A DNA stretch of 64,000 nt from the IMG/VR virus record IMGVR_UViG_3300028608_000006, positions 1 to 64,000 of that record. One strand, given 5' to 3'. The notes under the pieces are model-generated. The model was given only the letters and a program-made list of their open reading frames with translations. It ran no database searches and had not been told where the DNA came from. Shown here one piece after another: positions 4,472 through 47,301 of the stretch (positions are counted from its first letter, which is position 1; each line of letters begins with the position of its first letter). The translations under genes and the position numbers were made by a program.

Positions 4472-5140
4472 ATGGTCGACGTCAGTGAACTCCGCATTGC
4501 TACACCGCTGCCTGTTTCCGAAACGAATCCGGTAGCATTGGAACTCCCGGCTGTTGATGCCCTGAACCAGTGTCCTGAAGTTATCCGTCGTTTGCCGGAC
4601 GGTAGCATCTGGCTCAGTGCGCCAACCAAGGGTGCTTCCAGCAAGTCCACCAAACGCACCCGCTGCGAATGGAAGGAAGATGGTTACTGGTACCTGACCA
4701 GCGCCACCAAGCACTGGAGCCGTCAGACGATGGTGCTGACCAAGGTTAACTCCGCTCTGAAGGTGGTGATTGGTCAGATCCACGTCAAAGACGCCAACAC
4801 GCCTCCACTGAAGGTGTTCTGGAACAAGGGCAAGATCACACTGGGGTTCCGTCAGAACTTTGACAACCCAGAGATCGTTAACTCAGTCCTTCATCCGAAT
4901 GTGCCTCTGGGTACGACGTTCAAGCTCAGCATCGGCGTTACGCACACCGGGTACATCTCGGTTAACGTGTTGGTGCCTGGGTCTGATACCGTCAGCGCGA
5001 AGCTGTGGATGGATACGTCGTGGCGTGATCAGTTGTTGCAGTTCCACGGCGGTCTGTACAACCAGGTCGATTACACCGAGGACACTCTCCCGTACGACGG
5101 TTCTGAATCCATCATCAGCGACCTTGTCATCACCCATTGA
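4472..5140 (+). CDS. polysaccharide lyase family 7 (alginate lyase-like)
   Basis: PL7 motifs RTRCEWKE (R.ELRE-like), GQIH and QFHGGLYNQ (YFKAG.Y.Q-like); no signal peptide. Confidence 0.75.
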   Translation: MVDVSELRIATPLPVSETNPVALELPAVDALNQCPEVIRRLPDGSIWLSAPTKGASSKSTKRTRCEWKEDGYWYLTSATKHWSRQTMVLTKVNSALKVVIGQIHVKDANTPPLKVFWNKGKITLGFRQNFDNPEIVNSVLHPNVPLGTTFKLSIGVTHTGYISVNVLVPGSDTVSAKLWMDTSWRDQLLQFHGGLYNQVDYTEDTLPYDGSESIISDLVITH

Positions 5141-5153
5141 GTAAGGAAGTTGA

Positions 5154-22313: not shown

Positions 22314-22345
22314 CTATCCCCAGCACCCGAAGGCACTGGGGATAG
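22314..22345. terminator. hairpin terminator
   Basis: CTATCCCCAG...CTGGGGATAG. Confidence 0.7.
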
Positions 22346-22352
22346 TAACGGG

Positions 22353-22526
22353 TTACTTCTTGGGTACAGACAAGTCCATGCCGAACTCGAAATGCTTCGG
22401 TGGTTCAGCAGGCTTGATGATACCCTGAGACTTGCTCAGGTAAGACGGGCGTTCTGGAGGAACAGTCTCATGGCGACGACCGAGTCCTTCCAACAGTTTA
22501 GGATCAATAACAACGTCGTTGCTCAT
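22353..22526 (-). CDS. small hypothetical protein (57 aa), not in ORF track
   Basis: MSNDVVIDPKLLEGLGRR...HFEFGMDLSVPKK; AGGAG RBS; fills the gap before the hairpin. Confidence 0.6.
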   Translation of the reverse strand: MSNDVVIDPKLLEGLGRRHETVPPERPSYLSKSQGIIKPAEPPKHFEFGMDLSVPKK

Positions 22527-22540
22527 GACACTTCTCCTGG

Positions 22541-23152
22541 TTACGGAAACACTTTCTTGCGGAAGTCGCTGCCGATCTTCAGCTCATTAACTTCCCTAAC
22601 GATGATTTGGCCACCTTCAGGATACAGCATGAGATGAGGAACATTAGCAGCATACTTGTTGTAGCCATACTGGAAGTCCTCGCGTTGGCTGGCGGCTATA
22701 AAGCAGGAAGCAGTGATCCCGGTGTTTTTACTGATTTGGATTTTCAACCGGGTCCGGGATCGACCTGCCTCACCAGCTTTTAATGTTTCGCCGGCAATCA
22801 GGTTCTCCCACTTCCTCAGGAGAGCTGGGTCATCGTCCACCCAATTATGCTCTTCACTGAACTCATCCAACAGCTTGGTCTTCATCAAGCTTTCAACGAC
22901 GTGGAAACGGATACCGTCATCCAGTTCATTGACATCAATGATGTGCTCGTAAATGCGGTGACCGGAATACCAGAAGGGATGACCCTTGCTGAAAACCTCC
23001 GGCATGATCTTCGACGGAATCGGATCAAAGAAGAAGGAGATGTGGTCCATGTAATCTTCGGATACTTTAACGCCCTCCAAAGGTTTAGACCCAGAAGCGC
23101 GTCGAGTTAGGAGGACGTCGTACTGGGCGTCGGAATAGTGATACAGTTTCAT
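22541..23152 (-). CDS. hypothetical protein (203 aa), possible ADP-ribosyltransferase-like fold
   Basis: Starts MKLYHYS and has a later ISFFFDP strand; weak ART-fold resemblance only. Confidence 0.5.
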   Translation of the reverse strand: MKLYHYSDAQYDVLLTRRASGSKPLEGVKVSEDYMDHISFFFDPIPSKIMPEVFSKGHPFWYSGHRIYEHIIDVNELDDGIRFHVVESLMKTKLLDEFSEEHNWVDDDPALLRKWENLIAGETLKAGEAGRSRTRLKIQISKNTGITASCFIAASQREDFQYGYNKYAANVPHLMLYPEGGQIIVREVNELKIGSDFRKKVFP

Positions 23153-23168
23153 GGTGTACTTGCTCGAA

Positions 23169-23825
23169 TTAGGTTGTCGGTCGTGGGATCATGAGGTTCT
23201 TGATCTTCATCAGGGTAGGGAGCATTTGCGCGAACACTTGATCACGCGGTTGGTTGGCGTCGACTACAAGGTAAGACTCGGGTTTCGCCTTCGCTTGGTC
23301 CAGGTAGGCCTCACGAGCGCGCTCATAGAACGGAAGCCCGAGCTTGTCGTACTTGTTCACCTCGTCGCGATCTTCGCTCTGCATGCGCTCTAGGAAGGTC
23401 TCAGGAGGACCGTCCATCAACAGCGTCATATCAGGGTACATGCCGATCGCCAACTCGTGAATACCACGCAGGGTCTTTTGATCAACACCCATGCCAGCGC
23501 CTTGATAAGCGATAGTGGTGTCGAAGAAGCGGTCACACAGAACAACCTTACCTGCTTCCAATGCGGGACGTATCTTCAAAGCGACATGCTGAGCACGAGC
23601 AGCGTTAAACAACAGCATCGCTGCAACAGGATCAACATCTTCCTGAACACCTTCAAAGCCGTGACGCAGACCTAGGCGGATGAATTCAGCCAGATCAGTG
23701 CCACCGGGCTCACGGGTAACAACGTGCGGTACTTTTGCTTCATCAAACCAGCGACTGATGCGAGTCACCGTGCCAGACTTACCAGCGCCATCAATCCCAT
23801 CAACTACAAGTAGCAGGCCCTTCAT
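23169..23825 (-). CDS. tmk: thymidylate kinase
   Basis: DGIDGAGKS P-loop, TREPGGT, IRPALEAGKVVLCDRF, AYQG motifs. Confidence 0.93.
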   Translation of the reverse strand: MKGLLLVVDGIDGAGKSGTVTRISRWFDEAKVPHVVTREPGGTDLAEFIRLGLRHGFEGVQEDVDPVAAMLLFNAARAQHVALKIRPALEAGKVVLCDRFFDTTIAYQGAGMGVDQKTLRGIHELAIGMYPDMTLLMDGPPETFLERMQSEDRDEVNKYDKLGLPFYERAREAYLDQAKAKPESYLVVDANQPRDQVFAQMLPTLMKIKNLMIPRPTT

Positions 23826-24813
23826 GCTCTTTCCTCTTTGCTTCGCGGAGTTCTTCTTTTGTCGGCAATTTCGCCATCAATTGAGCCGACCTAATAAGAT
23901 CGCTGACTCGGTTAGTAATGTCGTTTTTGATAGCGCTTACGTCACGAGGACGAATGAGAGTACGACCTTTACAGAAGAAGGGAGCTACAAGGTTCAGTAT
24001 TTCACGAGTATGAGGTGTATCTTCGAGCTCAACATCCTGAGGAAGGAGAGTACCAGAACAGTAACGGCCCAGCCAGCTGGCCTCTTCAATGTTGAAAACG
24101 TATTCCCTCTGCGAAGGAATGCCCGCCGCTTTCCACTCATCCACCTTGTGTTCAAAAGGAACGTGGGTGACAGTTAGGTTAGACCAGTTGATATACCCCG
24201 TGCCGTTAGGAATGAGGAGTGGTTTCACTTCATCAATGATCGAGTCGTAAATCACACTCTTTGGCATGTCCCACAGCGGAGCACGGAATTCAATCCCGAT
24301 GTTGTCAGCGTTGCTCAGAGGACCGATGATCTTAGGCAACTTCAACAGCTGCTGGTATTCATCTTCCGTGAAGTCGACTTCGTTAAACGAGGTTTCCGCA
24401 GCGTCCTGTTTAATCCAACCGATCCAGCACGACGGAATGCTGGTGTCCATGTATTCCCGACGGATCATCAGCATACCCAAGACAGCGGCGAACTGTTGAG
24501 TCACGTCAAAGGTGACCACTGACCTGAACTTGTCCTGACGTGTTGGGAAAGGACAAACTGGCATGTGCATGATGTCATTGATCTTACCCTTGAACCTCTG
24601 TTTGGCTCTGGGTAGATACTCCTGGTCATCAAAGATCTTTTCATTGAACACCTTGATGATCTTCTCCATGGCAAGAATCTCACCAATACGGGTGTCCAGA
24701 CTGTTATTCACGTTGATCATGCAGATGTTGACCTTGAATCCCCGTTCCAACGCCATCTGCAACAAGTAGACCGATTCGACCCCGCCACTGAATGCAATAT
24801 TGACTGTTGTCAT
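23800..24813 (-). CDS. PP-loop (adenine nucleotide alpha-hydrolase, QueC-like) protein
   Basis: N-terminal IAFSGGVES matches the SGGxDS PP-loop; no C-terminal QueC Zn-Cys cluster. Confidence 0.55.
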   Translation of the reverse strand: MTTVNIAFSGGVESVYLLQMALERGFKVNICMINVNNSLDTRIGEILAMEKIIKVFNEKIFDDQEYLPRAKQRFKGKINDIMHMPVCPFPTRQDKFRSVVTFDVTQQFAAVLGMLMIRREYMDTSIPSCWIGWIKQDAAETSFNEVDFTEDEYQQLLKLPKIIGPLSNADNIGIEFRAPLWDMPKSVIYDSIIDEVKPLLIPNGTGYINWSNLTVTHVPFEHKVDEWKAAGIPSQREYVFNIEEASWLGRYCSGTLLPQDVELEDTPHTREILNLVAPFFCKGRTLIRPRDVSAIKNDITNRVSDLIRSAQLMAKLPTKEELREAKRKEHEGPATCS

Positions 24814-24971
24814 TTCTTCATGATCTCCACTACCTTGTCCTGCATGATGTCAAAGCCCCCTGACACCATAATCGAAAGAATGATTACAACGAATATTAAC
24901 GAACTCCATTCAAGGAGCAGCCAACGAAATTTAGGTGGCTTGTAGCCAGGCGGTTTATTAATCACGTCCAT
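24810..24971 (-). CDS. small single-pass membrane protein (53 aa), not in ORF track
   Basis: MDVINKPPGYKPPKFRWLLLEWSSLIFVVIILSIMVSGGFDIMQDKVVEIMKK; ATGA overlap with the next gene. Confidence 0.6.
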   Translation of the reverse strand: MDVINKPPGYKPPKFRWLLLEWSSLIFVVIILSIMVSGGFDIMQDKVVEIMKK

Positions 24972-24989
24972 CCCCAATCAAAAATAACC

Positions 24990-25013
24990 CCCTCCCCACC
25001 GAAGCAGGGAGGG
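24990..25013. terminator. short hairpin, possible terminator
   Basis: CCCTCCC...GGGAGGG preceded by ATAACC; T-tract on minus strand. Confidence 0.5.
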
Positions 25014-25026
25014 AATTGAACAACAG

Positions 25027-25872
25027 TTACGCAGTAGCTTCGGCTGGAGCGCCCTGTGTGGACATCAACAGCTTGTGGAAGGTGTTCAGGATGTAGGCTT
25101 CCAGCGCCTTGGCCTGATCCACGATCATCTTCGACCATGGCTCGAACGGCACTTCAGGATCGTTGAACATGGCGTTGTTTTGCAGTTCGTCAACCCCAGC
25201 CCATGCAACGGCTTCGTTCTGCGGTTCGCGCATTTGGAACGAGGCGACGTCGTTTGGAGCTTCCAGTGCGTAGACCACGCCGAAGTGGATGTTGCCCACG
25301 TAACCAGGTTCCGGCTGGCTGTCCATTACGAAACCGACCTTCTGGAAACCAGTAGCGTTGGCCGCACCCAGGAGTGCTTCGGTCATGTCGTGGTTTTCAC
25401 GGCTGGCCAGTTCGACTTCTTCGCCGTATTCGCGGATGTAGGAGTCGTCGATGGTTTCCAGCATGTCGATGGCTTGGGTTGGGATGATCTCGTCGTTGTC
25501 TTTGATGACGTGGTACGAAACGTCGTCACCCTCGATGTGACCACCGGCGCCCAGGGACAGCTTGGAGCTCAGCTGACCTTCGTTATTACGCTTGTTGCGT
25601 TTGTACACCGCGAACAACAGACGAGGAGCGCCTGGTACCGTGAAGTCAACCCGGTAGGTCAGACCGTAAGCAATACCTTGACGCAGGAGTTCCAGTGCGT
25701 GGTTCAGAGCTCGTACAGAGCCCATGACGCCACCGTCCAGTTGACGAAGTGCTTCGTTCAAGGGCTCTTGTTCCATGATCGTGAAAGCGTTATCAGGAGC
25801 AACGCGAGCCAGTACGTCCTTGTGAACGCCGTAGGTGAATTCGGAGTTTTTGGCGAGAGCTTTAAGAAACAT
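25027..25872 (-). CDS. NUDIX-superfamily phosphoesterase (COG4112/YmaB-like)
   Basis: EGQLSSKLSLGAGGHIE...REYGEEV...VGNIHFGVVY motifs. Confidence 0.7.
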   Translation of the reverse strand: MFLKALAKNSEFTYGVHKDVLARVAPDNAFTIMEQEPLNEALRQLDGGVMGSVRALNHALELLRQGIAYGLTYRVDFTVPGAPRLLFAVYKRNKRNNEGQLSSKLSLGAGGHIEGDDVSYHVIKDNDEIIPTQAIDMLETIDDSYIREYGEEVELASRENHDMTEALLGAANATGFQKVGFVMDSQPEPGYVGNIHFGVVYALEAPNDVASFQMREPQNEAVAWAGVDELQNNAMFNDPEVPFEPWSKMIVDQAKALEAYILNTFHKLLMSTQGAPAEATA

Positions 25873-25885
25873 GAAATATCCTTAA

Positions 25886-26977
25886 TTAACGGGATTGATT
25901 AAGTTGTTCGATCTTTGACAGGCCGTAGGTGTGGGCTTCGTCCCAGGACATATTGCGGCTGTAGCGCATATGGATAACATACCCCAGTGAGAGCTTACCG
26001 TCAGAGGTCTGTATCTCAAAGGGCACACACTCCCGATCGGCTTGAGAACGGTACTTCCCGTAACCCAATCGCTCAAGAAGAAAAACCCGCTGCACGGTTG
26101 CAGAACCCACATCAGGGCCTTCGCCACCAGGCTGTTTACGCTTCCACACCACCCATGGATTATCGACGTAGCCCCTTTGATCGTGACCAAACGGACTAGG
26201 TTCATCTTTGTCCGGGATATAATGACCTAGGTCAGCGAGGGTTGACTGCATTGTGTTACCCATGACCAACCTGTCTTCGGTGTCGATGACGTTGGGTACC
26301 AACCTCGCATGCTGAGGGTAGATCTGTTCCAGTTCTTGTGCCGATCGCTTGGAGTCAATCACGAACTCTTCAGGCGACATCTCCTGCAACTGGATAAGGC
26401 GCTGAAGATACTCAGCGTATTTCTTATCGTCAGCAAAGGTCATGCGAAGCTTCACTTCCAGAGAGCGGACATAATCGTCCTCTGTCAGACTAGCGCGTAG
26501 CTTACCAAGCTGTGTTGGTTCACCCTCCCGCAGTTTGCTAAGAGTTGCGCTCAGGCTGATGCGACGCATCATTCGGCTGATCAAGCCACCCTTTCCTTCT
26601 GCGAGTTCAAGCAGGTTACCTTTACCATCGTGGAAAAGCTCTGGCTCACCAGTAGGGGGTCTGCGGGCTTCCAGCAAGGTGATGATCTCGGTAAGAATCC
26701 CCTCTACAAACTGGGAGTCGTAATTGCTCGCTTCACCGGTCCACACGACAGAACCCGAACGCAGGTGGCAGATACGAGTGAATCCATTACCGCCACCCAT
26801 CATGCCTGGAAGGATACGGGACAAGTCACCGCCGTTCTCACAGATGGAGATCAGCTGCGTAGTCTTGTCGAAGAATGCGATGTACTTTTTATCGAGTGTA
26901 ATGTAGGGTAACAAATGACATTCAAACAAACCCAGTTCTTTCAACCGGTTCAACAACTTAGGAATCAGACTTTCCAT
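25886..26977 (-). CDS. hypothetical protein (363 aa)
   Basis: AAGGAG RBS before ATG 26977. Confidence 0.65.
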   Translation of the reverse strand: MESLIPKLLNRLKELGLFECHLLPYITLDKKYIAFFDKTTQLISICENGGDLSRILPGMMGGGNGFTRICHLRSGSVVWTGEASNYDSQFVEGILTEIITLLEARRPPTGEPELFHDGKGNLLELAEGKGGLISRMMRRISLSATLSKLREGEPTQLGKLRASLTEDDYVRSLEVKLRMTFADDKKYAEYLQRLIQLQEMSPEEFVIDSKRSAQELEQIYPQHARLVPNVIDTEDRLVMGNTMQSTLADLGHYIPDKDEPSPFGHDQRGYVDNPWVVWKRKQPGGEGPDVGSATVQRVFLLERLGYGKYRSQADRECVPFEIQTSDGKLSLGYVIHMRYSRNMSWDEAHTYGLSKIEQLNQSR

Positions 26978-27293
26978 CTTGGTACTCCTTAACAATCAAA
27001 GCTTCGGTGGCCTCTAAGAGCCGTACGAATTTACTCATCCACTCGTCAGTCCGTGGGACCGCCGTCCATGAGCACCCTCTTGGGTAGAACGTGGCGATCT
27101 GGACGTACAGGGGTTTACTGGGTTTATCGATATCAAACGTCTTTATCCAGATACTGGCGGTCTTCACATTGAAGTTGAAGTTAACCTTGAAGTCGTCGAC
27201 ATCGTGAATTTCGTATTGCCGCTTAGGAACATCCGTCACACCCGCTTCAGTCAGTCGGGTAAAGATGTTCTCAACATGGATTACGATTGACAT
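26958..27293 (-). CDS. hypothetical protein (111 aa)
   Basis: Start moved to MSIVIH at 27293. Confidence 0.55.
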   Translation of the reverse strand: MSIVIHVENIFTRLTEAGVTDVPKRQYEIHDVDDFKVNFNFNVKTASIWIKTFDIDKPSKPLYVQIATFYPRGCSWTAVPRTDEWMSKFVRLLEATEALIVKEYQDGKSDS

Positions 27294-29087: not shown

Positions 29088-29936
29088 TTAACCGAAGACG
29101 CCCAGCGAGTTGGATTGGATCAACTGGATAGGCTTCTTGACTTGCAAGCGCTTCAGTTGTTCTACCATCTCGCTAACACGGTTGAAGCTTTCCGAACCTT
29201 CGAAACGAGCCAGAAGGATTGGGTCCTTCATGTTCTTCTCGCAGGTGAAGATCACTTCGTCGATGGTGGTCGATACTTCCACCATTGGAGCACCCTGCAC
29301 TTCCTGGATGTAGCTCTCCAGACCGGCGGTGAGGTGTTTGCAAGCGCGCAGTACGCCCTGCTCTACCACAACGTCGTAAGTACTGTGATACTCGACCTCA
29401 CGCACCATGTCACCCATGCGTTGCGGTTTAGTCACAGAACGGAGGCTCAACGCGAAGTTGATGTCGGGGTTAGCCAACGCATCAGCCGTCCAATCCTTGT
29501 AAGGACCGAATGGAGCCAACTCAACTTCGTTGTACACCGGTGCGGAATCGTTACCCGTCATGATCCAGTGGATCTTGCGGATGTGAGCACACACGTTGGC
29601 CATCTCGATCGTGCGCAGACGGTTGATCCATTGAAAGACCTCCGTGATCTGCGTACGAACGATTTGACCGTTGATGCGTTCCATGAAGTACTGAGGAGGG
29701 TGCCCCAGCTCACAATACACCTGGCCTTCGCTGACGCGACGGTTCAGGTCACTCTCGGGAGCCATGCACTCCTTCAAGTACTGATTGAGGCGATACGAAA
29801 TGCCGCCGCGGTTTGGGATGTTGAACCCACCCGCGTTCATCCGGGTATACCCGGAACCGTCGCTCATCGGCTTGAGAATGCCACGCTTGCCAGATTCGGC
29901 CAGCATGATGTTCCCAAAAGAAATGACCTGACTCAT
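29088..29936 (-). CDS. prohead (head maturation) protease, phiKZ gp175-like
   Basis: GGFNIPNRGGISY and YCELGHP motifs plus SLRS/TYD; position upstream of the vRNAP block. Confidence 0.8.
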   Translation of the reverse strand: MSQVISFGNIMLAESGKRGILKPMSDGSGYTRMNAGGFNIPNRGGISYRLNQYLKECMAPESDLNRRVSEGQVYCELGHPPQYFMERINGQIVRTQITEVFQWINRLRTIEMANVCAHIRKIHWIMTGNDSAPVYNEVELAPFGPYKDWTADALANPDINFALSLRSVTKPQRMGDMVREVEYHSTYDVVVEQGVLRACKHLTAGLESYIQEVQGAPMVEVSTTIDEVIFTCEKNMKDPILLARFEGSESFNRVSEMVEQLKRLQVKKPIQLIQSNSLGVFG

Positions 29937-39261: not shown

Positions 39262-42200
39262 ATGGCTGACGATTTTGATATGGATTGGGGCGACGACCCC
39301 TTTTCGGGGGACATGAGTTTTGACAGTGATTTTGACACCCCGTCCAACCATGGCTTCCTGCGTTCGTTCACCACGGGGTTTCTGAGCGGTTTGGTGGAGA
39401 AGACCGTCGGTGATACTGACGCTCGAATCGACACCTTAAAGATGGTGTTGCCGCGCAGTTACCTGGGAGCGTTCAGCACATTAAGTGATCTGAACCGCCG
39501 TCGTGCAGAATTGATGCAAGAGATCAAAGGCGACTCCTACGAGTCTGTCAAAGATCTGCAATACCTCGCTGGGCGCGCTGCGGATAAGCTCCGCAAGATT
39601 GCCCCTAATAAGATCGCTGACGGTTTTCAGAACTTTAGCCAAAATGATTTCAGTGATTGGGAGAAGGCAAGCAGTGGTGGTCGTGATTCCGGACCAAGTC
39701 TTTCCGACACCACCGAAGACGAAATAAAATCAGCCATTGACAACGCCGACGCCAACTCCGTGCTTGAACGGGAGACGATGATCGGTTCGGCTGGCGCTAT
39801 CACGGACATGATGGCAAACGTCGGTGGTCGTACTCTGGCTAACTTGCAGGCCATGGGTCAAGGGACGGTACGTACTAACCAGCTGTTGGAGCAGATTGTT
39901 GACTTCCAACGTCGGGTTCAGGCGCGCAACGATGCCTTGAAACTTAACATCATGACCCGCTCGTATTTGACGGACGCTAAGTTCTACAAGTTCGTTGAAG
40001 CGAGTAACCACCGTATTGTTGAAGAGCTGAAGAAGATCAGCGACAGTTCTGCCAAGTCTGACTACGAAAAGACCACACACTCCCAAGCGGTGCGTAAGAC
40101 TATCCGGGAATCCGTGTTCAGTTCGGTCAAGAGCAAGATCGGCGGTATTTCTGGTTTCATCGATGATCGTTTTGGCAAGAACGCTCGTGGCGAGTTCACT
40201 GGCGGCTCAAACGAGCTGATCAGTTCGATTCGCATGGCTGCCGAGATGACCGAGGGGATGGACCTTAACCTCGGGCAGATGTTGGGTAACGCTGCTGCGG
40301 GTATCTTCATCAACAACCTCCCCCGGATGCTTAAATCGGGCAAGGCGAAGAAGTACCTTGACGACTTCAAGAAGAAGTTCCCTGCACAGGCTAAGTGGGC
40401 GGAAGATGCTTACATCCGCATCACTGACTTGGGTAACGTGGCGTCGTACGGTCTGACCAACGCCGAAGGCCTGACCAACACCATGGCGAAGTATTACCAA
40501 GGTGGCCAGACGTGGAGCGAAGCCGAGGATTACGAACAGTATCTCGACCTGCTTCCTGAGGGTGAGCAGAAGCTCAGCAAAGTTGAGTGGACTCTCATCA
40601 GCAACGCTCGCAAGATTGGTAACAAAGCGTTTGCAGGTGTGTTCGACAACATGAGCCGTTCCAACGGTACTCAGTACACCTTAGCGCGGCGTACGTTGGA
40701 CAATGGTCACGAGCAAGCTTTGTGGAACAACCGCTCCGACCGTACCCTCAACGAAGTGTTGCCACAATGGCTGAGTCAGATCCACTTGTCTCTTGAGAAG
40801 TTCCGGACAGGCGATGATGACATGCGGGCTATGACCTACGACTATGTCAAGGGTAAGTTCAACAGCCATGATCAGAAGATCTCCACCGTTCTCAACCAAG
40901 TGTTGGACAAACGTCAGTTCAGTAACCAAGCGACAATGGCGAACAATTTGGCGGAACAGATCGATGCTGATGGTGCCCTGACTCCGGAGGCTAAACGAGA
41001 GTTGGCGTTCCTTCTGGCGAAAGACACTGATGCGGACATGGGTTTCAGTCCTTACAACTACCTGCACGCCGATAAGGAGCACGGCGTGCCTCCTGCATTG
41101 GCGGCTGAGATCAAGCGCATGATTCAGGTGCAGTTTGGTATCAGCGACGATCACATCAAGGCCTTTAATGAAGGTACTGATGTAGACCGCTCGAAGGCTT
41201 TGATTTACATGCCGACTGAAAAAGGTCGTCAGCGAGTGGCAGAACTGGCGCCTTCGGCCAAATCGCTGGGTGCTTTCGCCCCTGACATCACCAACCGACT
41301 GGATGTCCTTAAGTCGAGCGGGTATTACGATGCAATGAAAGAAGCGGGTATCGTCACTACAACGGACGGTCAAGACAACGTCGACATGGAGAAGATCTGG
41401 GGTACGCTGAAAAGCTTCATCCAAGACACCAAGCGTGAGACCGCCCCACGCGTTCCTGACGCCGTTCCGTTGCCAAGCCGCGCCTTCGGTGGGGGTTATC
41501 CTCCGCAACCTGCTCCGCCTACCCCAGGACCTCTCCCACTGCCTGGTCCTACTCCCGTTATTCCGGAGTCGATCAAGCTGGATGGTTTGGAAGACCTGAC
41601 CAAGTCCATGAGCGGTATGGAGGGCTTGAAGGAGACCATGGAACAGCTGGGCAAGTCCTTCTCGGGATACCGTCCTCCTGATGCACCTCCGACGGTGGAC
41701 ATCGTTCCTATCACCACAGGGCTCGAAGGGATCAGTGCTAAGCTTGAGCAGATGCTTGCTCTGGGGACTACTCGTAACCAGATCCTGACCGACATCCTCC
41801 TGCGTCAACCGGCTGAAGCCAAGCCGTTGTCCGAGAGTGATGAGAAGGAAGTGTCTCGTGAGAAGAAAAGTCTCCTTGATAAGCTGAAGGGAACTTCGTT
41901 CAAGGATCTCTTTAACAGTGGCGTTGAAAAGCTGATGGACAACCAACCGCTGATCCTGGGTGGGTTGTTGGGTGGTCTGGCTGGCTTGGCGGTCTACGAT
42001 AAGAAGAGCGCTGCGTTGCTGGCGGGTGGCGCGATTATCGCTGGCGGCTACATGAAGCTGAAAAGCCTCAAGTCCAAAGAAGCTGACGATACACAGGACC
42101 TTTACGAGGAAGGGGCAGAGAACCCTATTCTGGAGGCGTCCAAGCTTCAGAACGGCGATTACTACGATGCCACTAAGGGCTTCTTGATCAAGTCCTGGAA

Positions 42201-45200
42201 AGACATCACTGGCAGTGTTGTGGACAACGTCACCAAGGTTGTGATTGGTGCTCGTCGTTTGGCCGGTAAACTCTTCACTTCGGAGAATAAGGAAGTCTTC
42301 CTGAGTGGTCTGGACAAGGTGCGGGAATACCTGCTCAAGGCGTACCACTTCATCGATCCGTTCAAACGGGTTAAACGTTGGGGTAATGCGCTGCGTACTC
42401 GCTTCTACCAGATGGACGTGTATAAGGAAGGGGAAGATTCACCGACACTCGTTGGGAAACGTTTTGAGTCGGGCGCTTATTGCAAGCGTAACGAATCGGG
42501 TGAGTTGGAGGTCATCAACGGCTGGAACGAGATTGATGGTCCGGTCTACACGCCTGAGGGTGAGGTCATCATTACTCAGGACGAGTACGACCGTGGGTTG
42601 CGTACCTCGATGGGGGTCAGTGTTAACAAGCTGCAAGAAGGCTCCAAGAAATTGGGTCGACTGGGCTTGGACTTCCTCGGTAAGGTGAAAGACAAAGCCT
42701 TGCCAATGATGGGAATGGCCGCGGATAAAGCGAAAGGTGCGATGACTGTTAGTTACGCGCCGATTGTGAACTCCGTAGATCGCATCTACAACCTGTTGCT
42801 CAAACACTGGGGCTACCAGCAGGAAGTAGACATTGAACTGCCTGAGCCGACCGTACAGCCTGTGGCAGGTCCTACCAAGGATCAACCAGGTACACCAAAG
42901 GGAACCCTCATCCCTACCATCGTGGAGAAACCCGAAGCGGATGTTGTTGATCCGAACAGGCCTTTCCCGAAGAACCCTTCCATCAAGCCTAAGACCCCAA
43001 TGGAGAATGCGGTCGAGAAGGTTAAAGAGGATCTCGAAAGCAATACCCCTCAGGGTCGTCTGAACTCCCTTGCTGACAAGAAGGAGAAGAGTGAAGAGAA
43101 ACGGAAAGCGGACTCTGAAGAAGCTCTGATCTACATGGCCAAGAACTTTGGCTTCGGTGCTAAGCCGGGTGAAGAGGAGAAGAAAAAGAGTCAAGGTCTG
43201 TTCGGTCTGCTGGCCAGTGGCTTTGGCGCTATCGCCAGTGGCATTGCTGGGATCACTACTTTCTTCACCAAGCGACTGTTCAGTGGTTTCCAAACCCTGT
43301 TCAGGTTCGGCTCTCTTGGTTTGAAGGTATTCCCTATCTTGGCGACCGGTATCACTGCGGTTGCTAAAGGGATCTTCACCCTCATTAAAACTCGCAGCGT
43401 TACTGAAGCTGGTGGTTCGGTATGGGATACTCTCACCGGGGGTGGTGAAGAAGATGCTGGTGAAGGCAAGAAGGGCAAGGGTAAGAAAGGCAAGAAAGGC
43501 AAGAAGGGTGAGAAAGCCCCTCGAACCGCGGGCAGTCGTTTGAAGACCGGTGTCAAAGGCGTTGGGTACGGCATGGCGGCTGGGATGGCTACTGACTTCC
43601 TGATGGATAGCGGTATTGTCGACGAAGACTCGGCTACCGGGACAGTGTTGGATGCGGCGAGTACGGCGGCCACTGCTTACGGCGGTTACCAAATGGCCGC
43701 TGGTGTTGCGACAGCCGCTGGTCTTGACATCAGTGCAGGTGCTGTAGCGACGGGCGTGGCTGCTGGCGGTGCTGCTGCTGCTTCTTGGGTGGGTGGTACA
43801 GCTGCGGCTGGTATGGTGGCGAACCTCGGCATTGCCGCGCTCCCTATGCTGTTGAACCCGTATGTCTTGGGTGCGATTGCTGTGGGTGCTGTTGGTTACG
43901 GGATCTACCGTTTTGTGAACCGTGGCGAAGGGAAACAGTTCGAACTTCGTATGGCTCAGTACGGTGTCTCTGACCCGGATTCCGATCTGGCGAAGAAGAT
44001 CCTGAAAGCGGAAGAGATGCTTCTTTCCCATGTCGTCATCGGTAACGGTCGCGCTTCGTTCTCGAAGCAAGCCCCTATCAGTGAAGTGATTCAGATGTTT
44101 GTAAGCGATCCGAAGAACAACAAGGAAGTCGGTGACGTCTTTACTTGGTTCAACGGTCGTTTCAAGCCTGTGTTGCTGACGTACATGGCTTGCCTTGACA
44201 CCATCAAGATGAAGTCCTTGAAGGAATACGACGAGGGCAAAACGCAAGACATCTACAAGGTGGCGAAGCAGACGCACGCGGCACTGAACGGGGTTCAACC
44301 TTACCCGTACTCCATCACGGCGAAGATCGATGCCGATACCCCTATCCTCGGTGAGAAGGCAACCCTGATCCGGGTTAACAACTTGCTGGGTGAGCTGAAG
44401 GATTACATCGACCGCAAGACACCATCTGAAGACCTGAACCCTATCACCACGCCTAAGGCTCAAAGTAAGGCGGGGCTTGAGAAGGAGAAGGCTGAGCTGA
44501 AACAAACCGTGGAAGGACCACGCGGTTTCTTTGACAGCAAAGAGAAGATGGCTCGGGTAGCCAAAGCTGAAACCCGCCTGCAACAGGTTGACGAGGAAAT
44601 CAAACGCCTCAACGACTCTTACAAAGCTGGTGGAATTGTCGCTCAGATCTACATCAAGGATTTGATGCCGGACGACAAGGCAATGGACCTGATGACCGCC
44701 ATCCGCGCTGCCTGCTACGGCAACGAGGAAGATGTTACATGGCGTGTCGAAGCGGTGATGAAGCTGGAGCGTTACTGCGAACCTTTGTTTGCTGATCGTG
44801 GGGAGTCGATGGAGTTCACTGGCCAGATTGGTCAGATCTTCAGTCTGTTCAAAGATTCCTTCCGGGTTAGCGATGGTGATGCAGACGATTGGTGCCTGTG
44901 GTTCCGTGACCGGTTCTTGCCGGTTCTGACGACCTACATGAACACCATGAAGACCTATCGCCGTGGACGCCCTGCCGTGGTGTGGAAGACCCTGTCGGCA
45001 ACGGCTCGGTACGAAATCGCCAAGGCATTGGTTGAAACGAAAGGTAAGGGTACGCTGTGGTTTGACTTCTCCATCTGGACTGTACGGGCATCTCCTTTCA
45101 AAGGCACTAAGTCTCCCGCTAAACCTGACAAGGTAGATCGGATGCTGAAGCTGCTGGGTGAAGCCAGTACTGCGGCGAAGTTAAAAGATCCTGAAGCAGA

Positions 45201-47301
45201 GGCCGGTAAAACCAACGCACAAACTTGGGCGAAGACTGTATCCCCGCACAAGGTCGGTGGCGACTTCCAACCTGAGGCGCCTAACGTCGATGACGTGAGC
45301 AAAGCCAAAACCCGTGGTGAAGTAGCGGGCGGTGGTCAGTTCGGTACCAATGGGTCTGGGACAGGCAACACGTACTCGGCAGGCGGTGTGTATCAAACGC
45401 CTTCCAACAAGTACGGGTTCGTTCCACTGGGTGGTGACTCCGATACCAGTCACTTGGACATGTCGGGTGTTAAAGCTCAGGAAGGGAATGACAAAGGGGT
45501 TAAGGTTCCCAAGAAGCTGGCTCAACAAATCCTGATTCGGGAAATGCTGAAACAAGGCTTTACGGATCCTCGGGAGATTGCGGAAGTACTGGCGCTGACG
45601 GATTACGAGTCGGGCGGTTATCAGAACACCACTGAGAGCCTGAAGTACTCTGATCCGAAACGTTTGGCGAGCATGTTCAGGGAAGTGAAGAGCGTCGAAC
45701 AAGCGCGCATGCTGATTGACCAAGGTGAGGTGGCCATTGCCAACACTGTTTACGGTGGCGGTAAAGGTGCATCCATTGGTAACCGTGAACCAGGAGACGG
45801 TTGGAAGTATCGTGGGCGTGGTTTCATTCAGCTCACGGGTAAAGCGAACTACGCCAAGACCGGACAAGAGTTGGGGATTGACCTGGTTAACAAACCGGAA
45901 CTCGCCTCCAATGACCCTAACGTCATGGCCGCTGTCGCTGTTAACTTCTTCAAGAACAGCAAGCTTCTGCGCAGTATCAGTCAGACCGGCAACTTCGGTG
46001 AAGCCGCAAAAGGACTTAACGGCGGTAACGAACTTCCAGGGATGCCTAAACGGTATCAGTTGTACCTGTCTTACCTGGAACAGTTGCAGAAAGGCGAACT
46101 CTCCACGGAAACCAGTACTGCCGAGGACCCAGCAGCTGCCGAAGGGCAAACGGCTGGTCAGATGTACGGTGGTGGCGGTTCCAGCGGTGGTGGCTCTACA
46201 GGGGCTCCTGCGGCAAGTGGTGGGGGTGGCGAAGCTCCAATGATGGGAAGCGGTAATCTGCCTTCTCTCGCTAACGCACCTGCGGGTGGCGGAGCATCTG
46301 GTAACTATCAGACTCCAGCTCCAGCGGGCGGTGGTGGGTACGGTAGTAACCCTGAGATGGATCCAGCCGCTGTTCCGTTCAGCGGGCCATACCAAGACTC
46401 CGACTTGCTGGTTAACAGCAATGCTTCGGGGACTAGTGGGCTTCGTCTGAAATCGGCTGAGTCGGTTGCTGGTGGTAAGGCTCACCCGGGTCTTACAGCG
46501 TTGTGCAAAATGATTCAACAGCGAGTACCGGGCTTCAAGGTGTTCACTGCTCTGAACGACGCGTACCACGTTAACAAAGGTTCTAAAGGGGCTCACCCTA
46601 AAGGACTGGCGGCTGACTTCACGTTGACCAATGGCATTGCAGGCAGTGATCGTGCTGCGACGATGGTAACGGAGATTCTGCGTCAAGCAGGTCTGCAACC
46701 CGGTGCCGAGTTCTTGGTCATCAACGAGTACAAGCGGAAAACTGCCATCGGTACAGGCGGTCATGTTCACGCGGGCTTTAAGTCGCCAGCGGCAGCACAG
46801 AAGTTCTTGGATGCAGCAGGTGGTACCCAGACCAACGGTCAGGACACTACCGGTACTGGCGGTGGAGCGGAAGTAGCGCCTGAAGAGGCACCAAACCGTG
46901 CACAGCCAACCCTGCCACCAGGTAACCCAATGTCTGCACCGGATGAAGAAGGCGGTGCCGCAGCTCCAAGCGCACAACCAGCTTCTGCTGCACCGGGTGC
47001 TGGCTTCACAGGCTTGCCTCTTCCTAATCAGCCACCTCCTCAGCAACCGCTTCCAGAGGGTTACAAAGGACCGGCGCCAGCTCCTCAGGCGCCAGCACCT
47101 GTTGCTCAAGCACCGAAGGCAGCTCCGGCTCCTGCGACGCCTGATAACAGTGCTCAAGTGGCTGAGCTGATGAAGAGCTTGATTGCCGCAACACAATCTT
47201 CTGGGGGTGACAACGCGCAGTTGTTGAAAGCCGTCCTAGATCAACTGGTTCAACTGAACAAGAAAGGGGAGAAAACTCCTCAAGGCGTGAAGGTGAACTA
47301 A
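39262..47301 (+). CDS. tail tape-measure / tail-associated lysin (phiKZ gp181-like) with GH19 and M15-like domains
   Basis: 2679 aa, divergent from vRNAP; ES...YRGRGFIQLTG GH19 motif; H-x6-D and HxH peptidase motifs; Gly/Ala/Pro-rich linkers. Confidence 0.85.
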   Translation: MADDFDMDWGDDPFSGDMSFDSDFDTPSNHGFLRSFTTGFLSGLVEKTVGDTDARIDTLKMVLPRSYLGAFSTLSDLNRRRAELMQEIKGDSYESVKDLQYLAGRAADKLRKIAPNKIADGFQNFSQNDFSDWEKASSGGRDSGPSLSDTTEDEIKSAIDNADANSVLERETMIGSAGAITDMMANVGGRTLANLQAMGQGTVRTNQLLEQIVDFQRRVQARNDALKLNIMTRSYLTDAKFYKFVEASNHRIVEELKKISDSSAKSDYEKTTHSQAVRKTIRESVFSSVKSKIGGISGFIDDRFGKNARGEFTGGSNELISSIRMAAEMTEGMDLNLGQMLGNAAAGIFINNLPRMLKSGKAKKYLDDFKKKFPAQAKWAEDAYIRITDLGNVASYGLTNAEGLTNTMAKYYQGGQTWSEAEDYEQYLDLLPEGEQKLSKVEWTLISNARKIGNKAFAGVFDNMSRSNGTQYTLARRTLDNGHEQALWNNRSDRTLNEVLPQWLSQIHLSLEKFRTGDDDMRAMTYDYVKGKFNSHDQKISTVLNQVLDKRQFSNQATMANNLAEQIDADGALTPEAKRELAFLLAKDTDADMGFSPYNYLHADKEHGVPPALAAEIKRMIQVQFGISDDHIKAFNEGTDVDRSKALIYMPTEKGRQRVAELAPSAKSLGAFAPDITNRLDVLKSSGYYDAMKEAGIVTTTDGQDNVDMEKIWGTLKSFIQDTKRETAPRVPDAVPLPSRAFGGGYPPQPAPPTPGPLPLPGPTPVIPESIKLDGLEDLTKSMSGMEGLKETMEQLGKSFSGYRPPDAPPTVDIVPITTGLEGISAKLEQMLALGTTRNQILTDILLRQPAEAKPLSESDEKEVSREKKSLLDKLKGTSFKDLFNSGVEKLMDNQPLILGGLLGGLAGLAVYDKKSAALLAGGAIIAGGYMKLKSLKSKEADDTQDLYEEGAENPILEASKLQNGDYYDATKGFLIKSWKDITGSVVDNVTKVVIGARRLAGKLFTSENKEVFLSGLDKVREYLLKAYHFIDPFKRVKRWGNALRTRFYQMDVYKEGEDSPTLVGKRFESGAYCKRNESGELEVINGWNEIDGPVYTPEGEVIITQDEYDRGLRTSMGVSVNKLQEGSKKLGRLGLDFLGKVKDKALPMMGMAADKAKGAMTVSYAPIVNSVDRIYNLLLKHWGYQQEVDIELPEPTVQPVAGPTKDQPGTPKGTLIPTIVEKPEADVVDPNRPFPKNPSIKPKTPMENAVEKVKEDLESNTPQGRLNSLADKKEKSEEKRKADSEEALIYMAKNFGFGAKPGEEEKKKSQGLFGLLASGFGAIASGIAGITTFFTKRLFSGFQTLFRFGSLGLKVFPILATGITAVAKGIFTLIKTRSVTEAGGSVWDTLTGGGEEDAGEGKKGKGKKGKKGKKGEKAPRTAGSRLKTGVKGVGYGMAAGMATDFLMDSGIVDEDSATGTVLDAASTAATAYGGYQMAAGVATAAGLDISAGAVATGVAAGGAAAASWVGGTAAAGMVANLGIAALPMLLNPYVLGAIAVGAVGYGIYRFVNRGEGKQFELRMAQYGVSDPDSDLAKKILKAEEMLLSHVVIGNGRASFSKQAPISEVIQMFVSDPKNNKEVGDVFTWFNGRFKPVLLTYMACLDTIKMKSLKEYDEGKTQDIYKVAKQTHAALNGVQPYPYSITAKIDADTPILGEKATLIRVNNLLGELKDYIDRKTPSEDLNPITTPKAQSKAGLEKEKAELKQTVEGPRGFFDSKEKMARVAKAETRLQQVDEEIKRLNDSYKAGGIVAQIYIKDLMPDDKAMDLMTAIRAACYGNEEDVTWRVEAVMKLERYCEPLFADRGESMEFTGQIGQIFSLFKDSFRVSDGDADDWCLWFRDRFLPVLTTYMNTMKTYRRGRPAVVWKTLSATARYEIAKALVETKGKGTLWFDFSIWTVRASPFKGTKSPAKPDKVDRMLKLLGEASTAAKLKDPEAEAGKTNAQTWAKTVSPHKVGGDFQPEAPNVDDVSKAKTRGEVAGGGQFGTNGSGTGNTYSAGGVYQTPSNKYGFVPLGGDSDTSHLDMSGVKAQEGNDKGVKVPKKLAQQILIREMLKQGFTDPREIAEVLALTDYESGGYQNTTESLKYSDPKRLASMFREVKSVEQARMLIDQGEVAIANTVYGGGKGASIGNREPGDGWKYRGRGFIQLTGKANYAKTGQELGIDLVNKPELASNDPNVMAAVAVNFFKNSKLLRSISQTGNFGEAAKGLNGGNELPGMPKRYQLYLSYLEQLQKGELSTETSTAEDPAAAEGQTAGQMYGGGGSSGGGSTGAPAASGGGGEAPMMGSGNLPSLANAPAGGGASGNYQTPAPAGGGGYGSNPEMDPAAVPFSGPYQDSDLLVNSNASGTSGLRLKSAESVAGGKAHPGLTALCKMIQQRVPGFKVFTALNDAYHVNKGSKGAHPKGLAADFTLTNGIAGSDRAATMVTEILRQAGLQPGAEFLVINEYKRKTAIGTGGHVHAGFKSPAAAQKFLDAAGGTQTNGQDTTGTGGGAEVAPEEAPNRAQPTLPPGNPMSAPDEEGGAAAPSAQPASAAPGAGFTGLPLPNQPPPQQPLPEGYKGPAPAPQAPAPVAQAPKAAPAPATPDNSAQVAELMKSLIAATQSSGGDNAQLLKAVLDQLVQLNKKGEKTPQGVKVN

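Follow-up and report, generated by a model that had tools for sequence, protein, structure and literature searches.

The motifs by which the PP-loop proteins QueC, Cap9 and QatC (PF06508) are recognised, a zinc-binding cysteine motif among them, have been defined (PMC13329287). Cap9 retains the QueC-type 7-carboxy-7-deazaguanine (CDG)-binding motifs, unlike QatC, which has a motif set of its own; both modify proteins, not nucleotides, and a zinc-less branch of the same superfamily, that of GMP synthase, acts on a nucleoside monophosphate (PMC13329287). A further described relative is YmaB, a Nudix homologue encoded in the ribonucleotide reductase (RNR) operon of Bacillus subtilis, for which preliminary deoxynucleoside triphosphate (dNTP) pyrophosphohydrolase activity is on record (PMC5960316). 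Here we describe a block of six open reading frames (ORFs), all on the minus strand in the ORF list, at positions 22353-25872 of a 64,000-nucleotide stretch of DNA (the window), which is the first 64 kb of record IMGVR_UViG_3300028608_000006. The block encodes a NUDIX-like hydrolase, a 55-residue hydrophobic peptide, a zinc-less QueC-like PP-loop enzyme, a dTMP kinase (Tmk), a protein called LYHYS after its N-terminus and a proline-rich protein of 57 residues. We read it, tentatively and at a little less than an even chance, as a collinear accessory block for the supply of thymidylate and the dNTP pool that contains one enzyme of unassigned substrate.

The PP-loop enzyme (337 residues, positions 23800-24813, minus strand) matches phrog_8825 (E 5.7e-28) and belongs by its fold near QueC. 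An N-terminal adenine-nucleotide alpha-hydrolase domain of about 230 residues, with the PP-loop SGGVES at residues 9-14, is followed by a helical C-terminal part of about 100 residues (233-337). Models for QueC, LarE and TilS match through the first 40-80 residues only. For the AlphaFold model (16 homologues, pLDDT 84.8, pTM 0.83), an exhaustive structure ranking by VIA-align placed Cap9 first (9nto_B, Z 15.3, 171 residues aligned, rmsd 2.9), QueC second (3bl5, Z 13.6) and YcfA from Erwinia amylovora third (9kq6, Z 13.1); ThiI, LarE, TilS, NcsA, GMP synthase, MnmA and NadE form the next tier at Z 8.7-12.3. Foldseek agrees, with a match to QueC (2pg3) at E 4.7e-4. The PP-loop and alpha-hydrolase fold expected of QueC are both present, the former as the SGGVES variant.

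In the family alignment S9, G10, G11, E13, S14 and K185 are invariant. The loop reads SGGxES, with an invariant Glu where QueC has Asp (SGGxDS), and a Pro-Leu-Trp...Lys185 element (PLW-x3-K) is kept. The alignment shows no invariant or nearly invariant cysteine and no C(x)8CxxCxxC zinc motif, which argues that the family lacks a zinc site. The substrate motifs YxQxHxxE, VPxRN and YPDC were not seen on inspection of the same alignment; residues conserved within the family itself are N29, N34, E45, Q106, Q107, I131-G-W133 and D137. A first-pass annotation of the window had called this protein QueC-like without a zinc cluster and had recorded the SGGVES motif, a 26-nt overlap with tmk and the LYHYS N-terminus of the protein encoded beyond tmk, all of which we find as described.

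Pfam model PP-loop reaches 13 of 16 relatives of this protein and model QueC reaches 9 of 16, all below threshold, and by Atlas features the protein stands at 0.95 to viral QueC-like clusters. An exhaustive profile search of 1.84 billion representatives returned 28 proteins with E <= 1e-30, or 45 if the limit is relaxed to E <= 1e-10; weaker matches beyond those share with the profile only its generic N-terminal 60 residues. Every member with a contig examined lies on a phiKZ-like jumbo-phage contig. The profile finds three loci in IMG/VR, too few for statistics. No fused domain was recognised in a Pfam scan of the longer members (349-438 residues), and no such viral cluster is described in the review of the QueC family. 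A single-sequence search of the PDB aligned only the PP-loop motif, to LarE (E 0.9); the same search with the other two of the three uncharacterised proteins gave noise.

The gene that follows, tmk (218 residues, positions 23169-23825, minus strand), begins at 23825 within the end of the PP-loop gene, whose stop codon is at 23800-23802. Its product matches PF02223 at E 2.4e-38 and scores 141.1 bits against TIGR00041, above the curated equivalog cut-off of 83.25. The P-loop GxxGxGK[ST], the TREPGGT region and the DRF motif are intact, and G10, G13, G15, K16, E39-T43, D98 and R99 are invariant in the alignment, so that the earlier description of an intact dTMP kinase stands.

The record is 231,788 bp long and rated complete by CheckV, and among cultured phages the proteins studied here have their nearest relatives in Pseudomonas phage EL, Klebsiella phage Miami and Erwinia phages. 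No canonical enzyme of nucleotide metabolism other than Tmk was detected in this genome, an unusually sparse set for its size, and the same is true of EL. Neither contains ThyA, ThyX, dCMP deaminase, dUTPase or the RNR large subunit; each control search found its family in at least 5 of 14 reference genomes. It follows that the phage probably depends on host-derived nucleotides. TGT/DpdA, QueD, FolE and radical SAM/QueE proteins are likewise missing from the complete 231.8-kb genome, and TGT and QueD from EL, Miami and Kwan. The standard 7-deazaguanine pathway is ruled out; the first-pass annotation had rejected it on seeing no QueD, QueE or FolE, and genome-wide searches bear this out.

Upstream of the PP-loop gene lies the gene for the NUDIX-like protein (281 residues, positions 25027-25872, minus strand; phrog_8902, E 1.5e-27), a COG4112/YmaB/TM1382-type enzyme and, to judge from its sequence, a predicted (d)NTP pyrophosphohydrolase. 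We take YmaB to be the founding member of COG4112. The likeness to this group had been proposed before, and it is supported by the COG-derived name that JGI gives to relatives of the phage protein, "predicted NUDIX family phosphoesterase", and by the catalytic helix. In an alignment of 25 sequences, G111, H112, E148 and E152 are invariant and G110, R147 and E151 nearly so, which conserves the REx2EE form of the NUDIX helix (REUxEE). The GGH loop (110-112) is some 30 residues from R147, a spacing that departs from the canonical 23-residue Nudix box, Gx5Ex7REUxEExGU. A Pfam scan of the window protein gave no match, and model NUDIX is reached by 5 of 25 relatives (best E 5e-4). The family profile matches TM1382 (PDB 3e57) weakly, at E 0.021 and over the GGH region only, and tblastn finds genes of phages SP-15 and LIS04 that carry the annotation "nudix hydrolase" (E 2e-4 and 7e-4). 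Many relatives (P0022, P0025, P0045 and P0071 among them) have 372-422 residues, with a C-terminal extension of about 110 residues that is poorly conserved and unrelated; the window and EL copies lack it.

Gene neighbourhoods were compared across 12 lineages of an EL-type clade, namely the window, EL and contigs L005, L007, L008, L014, L015, L025, L026, L027, L028 and L030, with PP-loop protein identities of 30-95%. The NUDIX-like gene lies directly upstream of the PP-loop gene in all 12, and tmk lies directly downstream in all 12, with at most the 57-residue gene between. The latter gene is present in 10 (one locus is truncated) and the LYHYS gene in six. Neighbourhood conservation had been named as a check by the first-pass annotation; the NUDIX, PP-loop and tmk genes pass it throughout this clade, down to about 30% PP-loop identity, and are unlinked outside it. 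Miami carries the PP-loop gene at 106 kb and tmk at 213 kb, Kwan at 113 kb and 99 kb, and the NUDIX-like gene is absent from both. The families are all scattered in Noxifer. SPN3US has a PP-loop gene adjoining a DUF488 gene, and no NUDIX gene. RSL2 has NUDIX-like, PP-loop and LYHYS genes within 11 kb, with tmk some 40 kb away from the PP-loop gene. Phages phiKZ, 201phi2-1 and OBP lack all three families.

Two further arrangements bring the PP-loop gene close to related functions. In L029, a jumbo-phage contig of 234,968 bp from a food metagenome, an intein-bearing ThyA gene lies 2.5 kb downstream of it, and in Miami it is 4 kb upstream of the DHFR gene. With tmk in the EL-type clade, this places the family near thymidylate metabolism in three arrangements. 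The L029 ThyA gene (contig positions 8442-10909) is split by an intein with a LAGLIDADG endonuclease, giving a 635-residue product, and is followed by a 99-residue ThyA fragment. The SPN3US member, gp147 (335 residues; 6008-7343 of L021), overlaps the downstream DUF488 gene, as gp146 of Kwan overlaps gp147; the partner in this branch is not tmk.

Two intrinsic-terminator-like hairpins on the minus strand divide the block, each with a 14-bp stem, a TTCG loop and a T-rich tail. One, at 24986-25017, directly follows the NUDIX stop codon and is conserved in L014 (97%), L015 (88.5%) and L008 (88%). The other, at 22314-22345, directly follows the 57-residue gene and forms the operon end; weak blastn matches to the upstream hairpin lie just after the 57-residue gene in L015 (E 0.47) and L008 (E 0.04). 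Both hairpins are alike in their G+C-rich stems and TTCG tetraloops, and they may represent a phage-specific terminator family. From the hairpin positions, a first transcription unit ends with a 369-residue gene and the NUDIX gene, and a second comprises the PP-loop, tmk, LYHYS and 57-residue genes. The first-pass annotation placed the other five ORFs correctly, adjacent and on one strand, and overlooked both the conserved 57-residue gene and the terminator between the NUDIX and PP-loop genes.

The 57-residue ORF (positions 22353-22526, minus strand) is a real gene. Its proline-rich product is conserved in EL-type relatives, with identities of 91-98% in L008, L014 and L015, 58-65% in L007 and L026, and 43-46% in L005, L025, L028 and EL. 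The EL homologue is an unannotated ORF of about 57 residues between ORF200 and ORF201 (AJ697969.1, 210337-210510; 44% identity, profile E 5.7e-28); newer EL-like records list the homologue as hypothetical. In EL, L005, L025 and L028 the gene separates tmk from the PP-loop gene; in L026 and the window's group it follows tmk. RisingSun, an Erwinia phage (MF459646.1), has neither PP-loop nor NUDIX gene, yet it has tmk and, two genes after it, an unannotated 51-residue homologue (4992-5147, profile E 2.7e-13). These shifts in position and the RisingSun case identify tmk as the constant companion of the gene. The 51-residue ORF in RisingSun partly overlaps the end of gp7, a 123-residue product annotated "putative thymidylate kinase"; the real Tmk is gp6.

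We propose that the EL-type block consists of two transcription units that would serve deoxynucleotide supply, above all that of thymidylate. At the end of the first unit, the YmaB/COG4112-type NUDIX enzyme most likely cleaves (d)NTPs to monophosphates, trimming or sanitising the pool. The second unit, between the two strong hairpins, would provide the PP-loop enzyme, dTMP kinase, a possible ADP-ribosyltransferase (ART)-fold protein in half of the lineages, and the 57-residue protein, which may act as a Tmk-associated factor. A phage lacking thymidylate synthase, RNR, dUTPase and dCMP deaminase would have to live on nucleotides taken from its host, and Tmk would re-phosphorylate dTMP. The PP-loop enzyme would adenylate a carbonyl or carboxyl group of a probably nucleobase-like substrate, the group then being replaced by an amine; that the zinc-less GMP synthase branch acts on a nucleoside monophosphate counts in favour of such a substrate.

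Several observations weigh against this proposal. The conserved terminator lies between the NUDIX gene and the PP-loop-tmk operon. Of the five proteins, three are without a known substrate, and Cap9 and QatC, the closest structural relatives of the PP-loop enzyme, do not act on nucleotides. The PP-loop protein evolves faster than its neighbours, with 59% identity to its L008 counterpart against 82% for Tmk and 93% for the 57-residue protein. Miami, Kwan and SPN3US retain the PP-loop enzyme away from tmk and without NUDIX. A complex prediction for Tmk with the 57-residue protein gave no answer (score 0.00) and is evidence neither way. Finally, the gene order is collinear across EL-type contigs, starting at the prohead protease and reaching the tail tube and sheath genes, so that adjacency need not be selected and may simply be inherited.

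The last point is the basis of the alternative that survives best, in which the genes are independent accessory genes held together by inherited collinearity; Tmk would serve ordinary salvage and the others would act elsewhere. We give this a real but minor chance. The flanks are collinear as well, with the phiKZ-type prohead protease (Peptidase_S80, positions 29088-29936, minus strand, E 4.6e-64) upstream, where the block shared with EL-type contigs starts, and tail tube and sheath genes downstream, in L005, L007, L008, L015, L025, L026, L028 and the window. The same families are scattered in Miami, Kwan, Noxifer and SPN3US and partly so in RSL2, a terminator stands between the NUDIX and PP-loop genes, and LYHYS may be there or missing without effect on the rest of the block. 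However, the trio stays contiguous even at about 30% identity, whereas the 57-residue gene changes place and LYHYS is not always present, which indicates that the region does rearrange; other lineages have the PP-loop gene near ThyA or DHFR, and RSL2 keeps three of the families within 11 kb. The genes had been called a module at first pass. Their linkage stands, and their coupling is unsecured in view of the terminator, the collinearity, the scattering elsewhere and the absence of LYHYS from half of the lineages.

Base replacement in T4 and in the Z-genome phages proceeds through a dNTPase, an enzyme that modifies deoxynucleoside monophosphates (dNMPs) and a dNMP kinase. The order of enzymes in the block would fit this logic, and an improbable alternative is that the block makes a non-canonical deoxynucleotide: the NUDIX enzyme would convert a dNTP to the dNMP, the PP-loop enzyme would aminate or conjugate the adenylated base carbonyl, and Tmk would re-phosphorylate the product for incorporation into modified virion DNA. 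The contiguity of the three genes in 12 of 12 lineages, the lack of a canonical thymidylate synthase and the known action of PP-loop chemistry on bases, as in GMP synthase (PMC13329287), are in its favour. Yet Tmk scores as an ordinary dTMP kinase at equivalog level, no second specialised enzyme or dedicated polymerase signal was found, and the literature searched has no report of modified DNA in EL. Moreover, the PP-loop enzyme occurs without NUDIX in Miami, Kwan and SPN3US, and, with the terminator between them, the NUDIX gene and the operon are uncoupled. A more specific form, which we likewise consider improbable, is that EL-type jumbo phages make a non-canonical pyrimidine deoxynucleotide: NUDIX would supply the dNMP, the PP-loop enzyme would exchange a base carbonyl for ammonia or an amino compound, and Tmk, perhaps guided by the 57-residue protein, would re-phosphorylate it, giving an undescribed base modification in virion DNA.

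The LYHYS protein (203 residues beginning MKLYHYS, positions 22541-23152, minus strand; phrog_23338, E 3.8e-51) bears on a further alternative. None of its 164 relatives has a Pfam domain, and a Pfam scan of 31 family members at E values up to 10 found no ART family. Its profile gave pattern matches and no cellular relative in 185,579 prokaryote genomes. Y4, H5, Y6, D36, H37, S39, E69, E87, Y167 and H173 are invariant; H5 on strand 1, H37 and S39 on strand 3, and E69 and E87 on later strands appear, as judged by strand order, in the sequence expected of the ART catalytic triad (H-Y-E or R-S-E). The structure model is of high quality (pLDDT 93.1), but none of the structural matches reaches significance. 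Those that cover the full length are nonetheless all ART-fold proteins, at Z 4.3-6.1, below the noise level of the tool (Z 7-8): Tpt1 (Z 6.1), DarT from four organisms (Z 4.5-5.9), the Rhs toxin TreX (5.4), HopF/AvrPphF (5.2), and also heat-labile enterotoxin, Scabin and a DUF952 protein. Foldseek places DarT first (E 0.09), then the pertussis and cholera toxin A chains (range E 0.09-1). By features the Atlas neighbours are clusters of DarT/PARP and Arr, by shape DUF952 (TM 0.36/0.50), and BFVD returns PolyVal-ART and Arr entries, none significant. Compared with DarT, Tpt1 (KptA), Arr and DUF952, the LYHYS protein likewise carries an aromatic-His motif on its N-terminal beta-strand, comparable to the LYH-type motif of those families, and invariant Glu residues on later strands, and these families are its sole full-length fold matches. 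It differs in that its scores lie at noise (Z <= 6.1, Foldseek E >= 0.09, TM <= 0.5), in a helical insert of about 75 residues, in the lack of any sequence-profile link and in having no macrodomain or antitoxin neighbour. The earlier label "ART-like" is consistent with these weak fold matches, which are all that stands behind it; we consider an ART-type fold rather more probable than not.

In this alternative, the block would be directed at proteins or at host defence: the PP-loop enzyme would ligate a nucleobase carboxylate to a protein amine in the manner of Cap9 and QatC, or drain a precursor against type IV CBASS or Qat, while the ART-like and NUDIX proteins would act on immunity based on NAD or ADP-ribose. 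We give this only a small chance. Cap9 is the best fold match and YcfA the third; a small conserved protein is encoded beside the PP-loop gene in EL, L005, L025 and L028; the ART-fold hints lead toward DarT, Tpt1 and Arr; and phage anti-defence genes are typically accessory and patchy. However, the zinc motif kept by Cap9 and QatC is absent, as are the QueC-type CDG-binding motifs kept by Cap9, and no TGT-like partner is found in the genome. In addition, the 57-residue protein tracks tmk and not the PP-loop gene, as RisingSun shows, PADLOC returned only a QueC N-terminal match (E 0.025), and the ART fold of LYHYS is not established. The first-pass annotation had offered modification, sanitising or anti-defence together, a range too broad to be wrong; positive support extends to sanitising or pool supply only, and no evidence was found of modified DNA or of anti-defence activity.

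Other roles for the PP-loop enzyme were considered and ranked lower. tRNA modification was down-weighted, as the genome has no tRNA genes and TilS, ThiI and MnmA (Z 10.6-12.3) score below the QueC clade; host tRNAs are possible targets. Sulfur transfer was down-weighted for want of a conserved cysteine, and a NAD synthetase role was ranked low on the NadE scores (Z 8.7-10.5).

The 55-residue ORF with one hydrophobic segment (positions 24810-24977, minus strand) starts with TTG inside the terminator tail, and its stop codon overlaps the ATG of the PP-loop gene. It was described before as a small membrane peptide. The ORF and the hydrophobic segment are there; its only relative, however, is a 49-residue ORF in the closest contig, L014 (37% identity, with a shared C-terminus and the hydrophobic segment retained), and none was found in nine related loci. 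In other relatives a longer NUDIX gene fills this space. The ORF is either a lineage-specific small membrane protein or a spacer. L014, whose PP-loop protein is 95% identical, has two small hydrophobic ORFs of about 54 and 49 residues at 1157-1472, between terminator and PP-loop gene, and this spacer seems to collect small membrane-protein genes. On the other side of the NUDIX gene, 13 nt upstream, is the gene for the 369-residue conserved protein (positions 25886-26995, minus strand), with no Pfam or PHROG match. Relatives with 30-74% identity lie directly upstream of the NUDIX gene in L005, L007, L008, L015, L026 and L028, and the two genes probably share one transcription unit.

Together with the closest cultured relatives, the Peptidase_S80 gene identifies the source as a phiKZ/EL-like jumbo phage known only from metagenomes. 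The genome has a G+C content of 51.9%, the standard genetic code suffices for it and no alternative code is needed, and a megablast search of the region against 50,697 phage records gave zero matches. A 2679-residue ORF occupies window positions 39262-47301 on the plus strand, opposite to most nearby genes.

The zinc-less PP-loop enzyme, the LYHYS protein and the 57-residue tmk companion are uncharacterised families that appear to be confined to jumbo phages in the genomes examined. EL, a cultivable Pseudomonas phage, carries the core of the block, with the NUDIX gene as ORF198, the PP-loop gene as ORF200, the unannotated 57-residue gene and tmk as ORF201, and the question can be tested there directly. 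Should the PP-loop enzyme act on a nucleotide, a new DNA base or salvage reaction would be possible; should it act on none, the block would be ordinary phage nucleotide housekeeping.

The block can also be compared with other known systems. The T4 pair of gp56 dCTPase and gp1 dNMP kinase and the MazZ/PurZ/DatZ set resemble the block in that a phage pyrophosphohydrolase and a dNMP kinase are encoded together, here with a candidate base-altering enzyme between them. Homology to gp56, gp42, PurZ or DatZ was not found, nor was evidence of a replaced base. The NUDIX-like protein and YmaB/TM1382 differ in that the sequence link is weak, in an extra N-terminal region of about 60 residues in the phage proteins, often joined by the C-terminal extension, and in a neighbour that is tmk where YmaB has RNR. 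They share a GGH loop and an REx2EE helix parted by an insert, the COG name that JGI gives to relatives of the phage protein, and a link to genes of deoxynucleotide metabolism.

The PP-loop enzyme differs from QueC, Cap9 and QatC in its SGGxES loop, in the zinc and substrate motifs that go unseen, in its extra helical C-terminus and in scores below the Pfam threshold. The genome lacks the company in which QueC is expected, that is QueD, QueE, FolE and TGT. The fold agrees with Cap9, and the absence of the zinc motif and of the TGT-like Cap10 places the enzyme outside the Cap9/QatC group overall; no CD-NTase or QatABD partners were noticed, neither having been searched for separately. What it shares with all three is the fold over residues 1-232 (Z 13.1-15.3), a PP-loop in the corresponding position, the conserved Pro-Leu...Lys element that follows the central strand and, by expectation, a chemistry of ATP-dependent adenylation followed by amine attack. 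Recent work has shown that anti-phage defence has repurposed the QueC scaffold to conjugate proteins with nucleobases, and a phage-borne zinc-less branch wired to a thymidylate kinase would extend that repurposing to the side of the virus.

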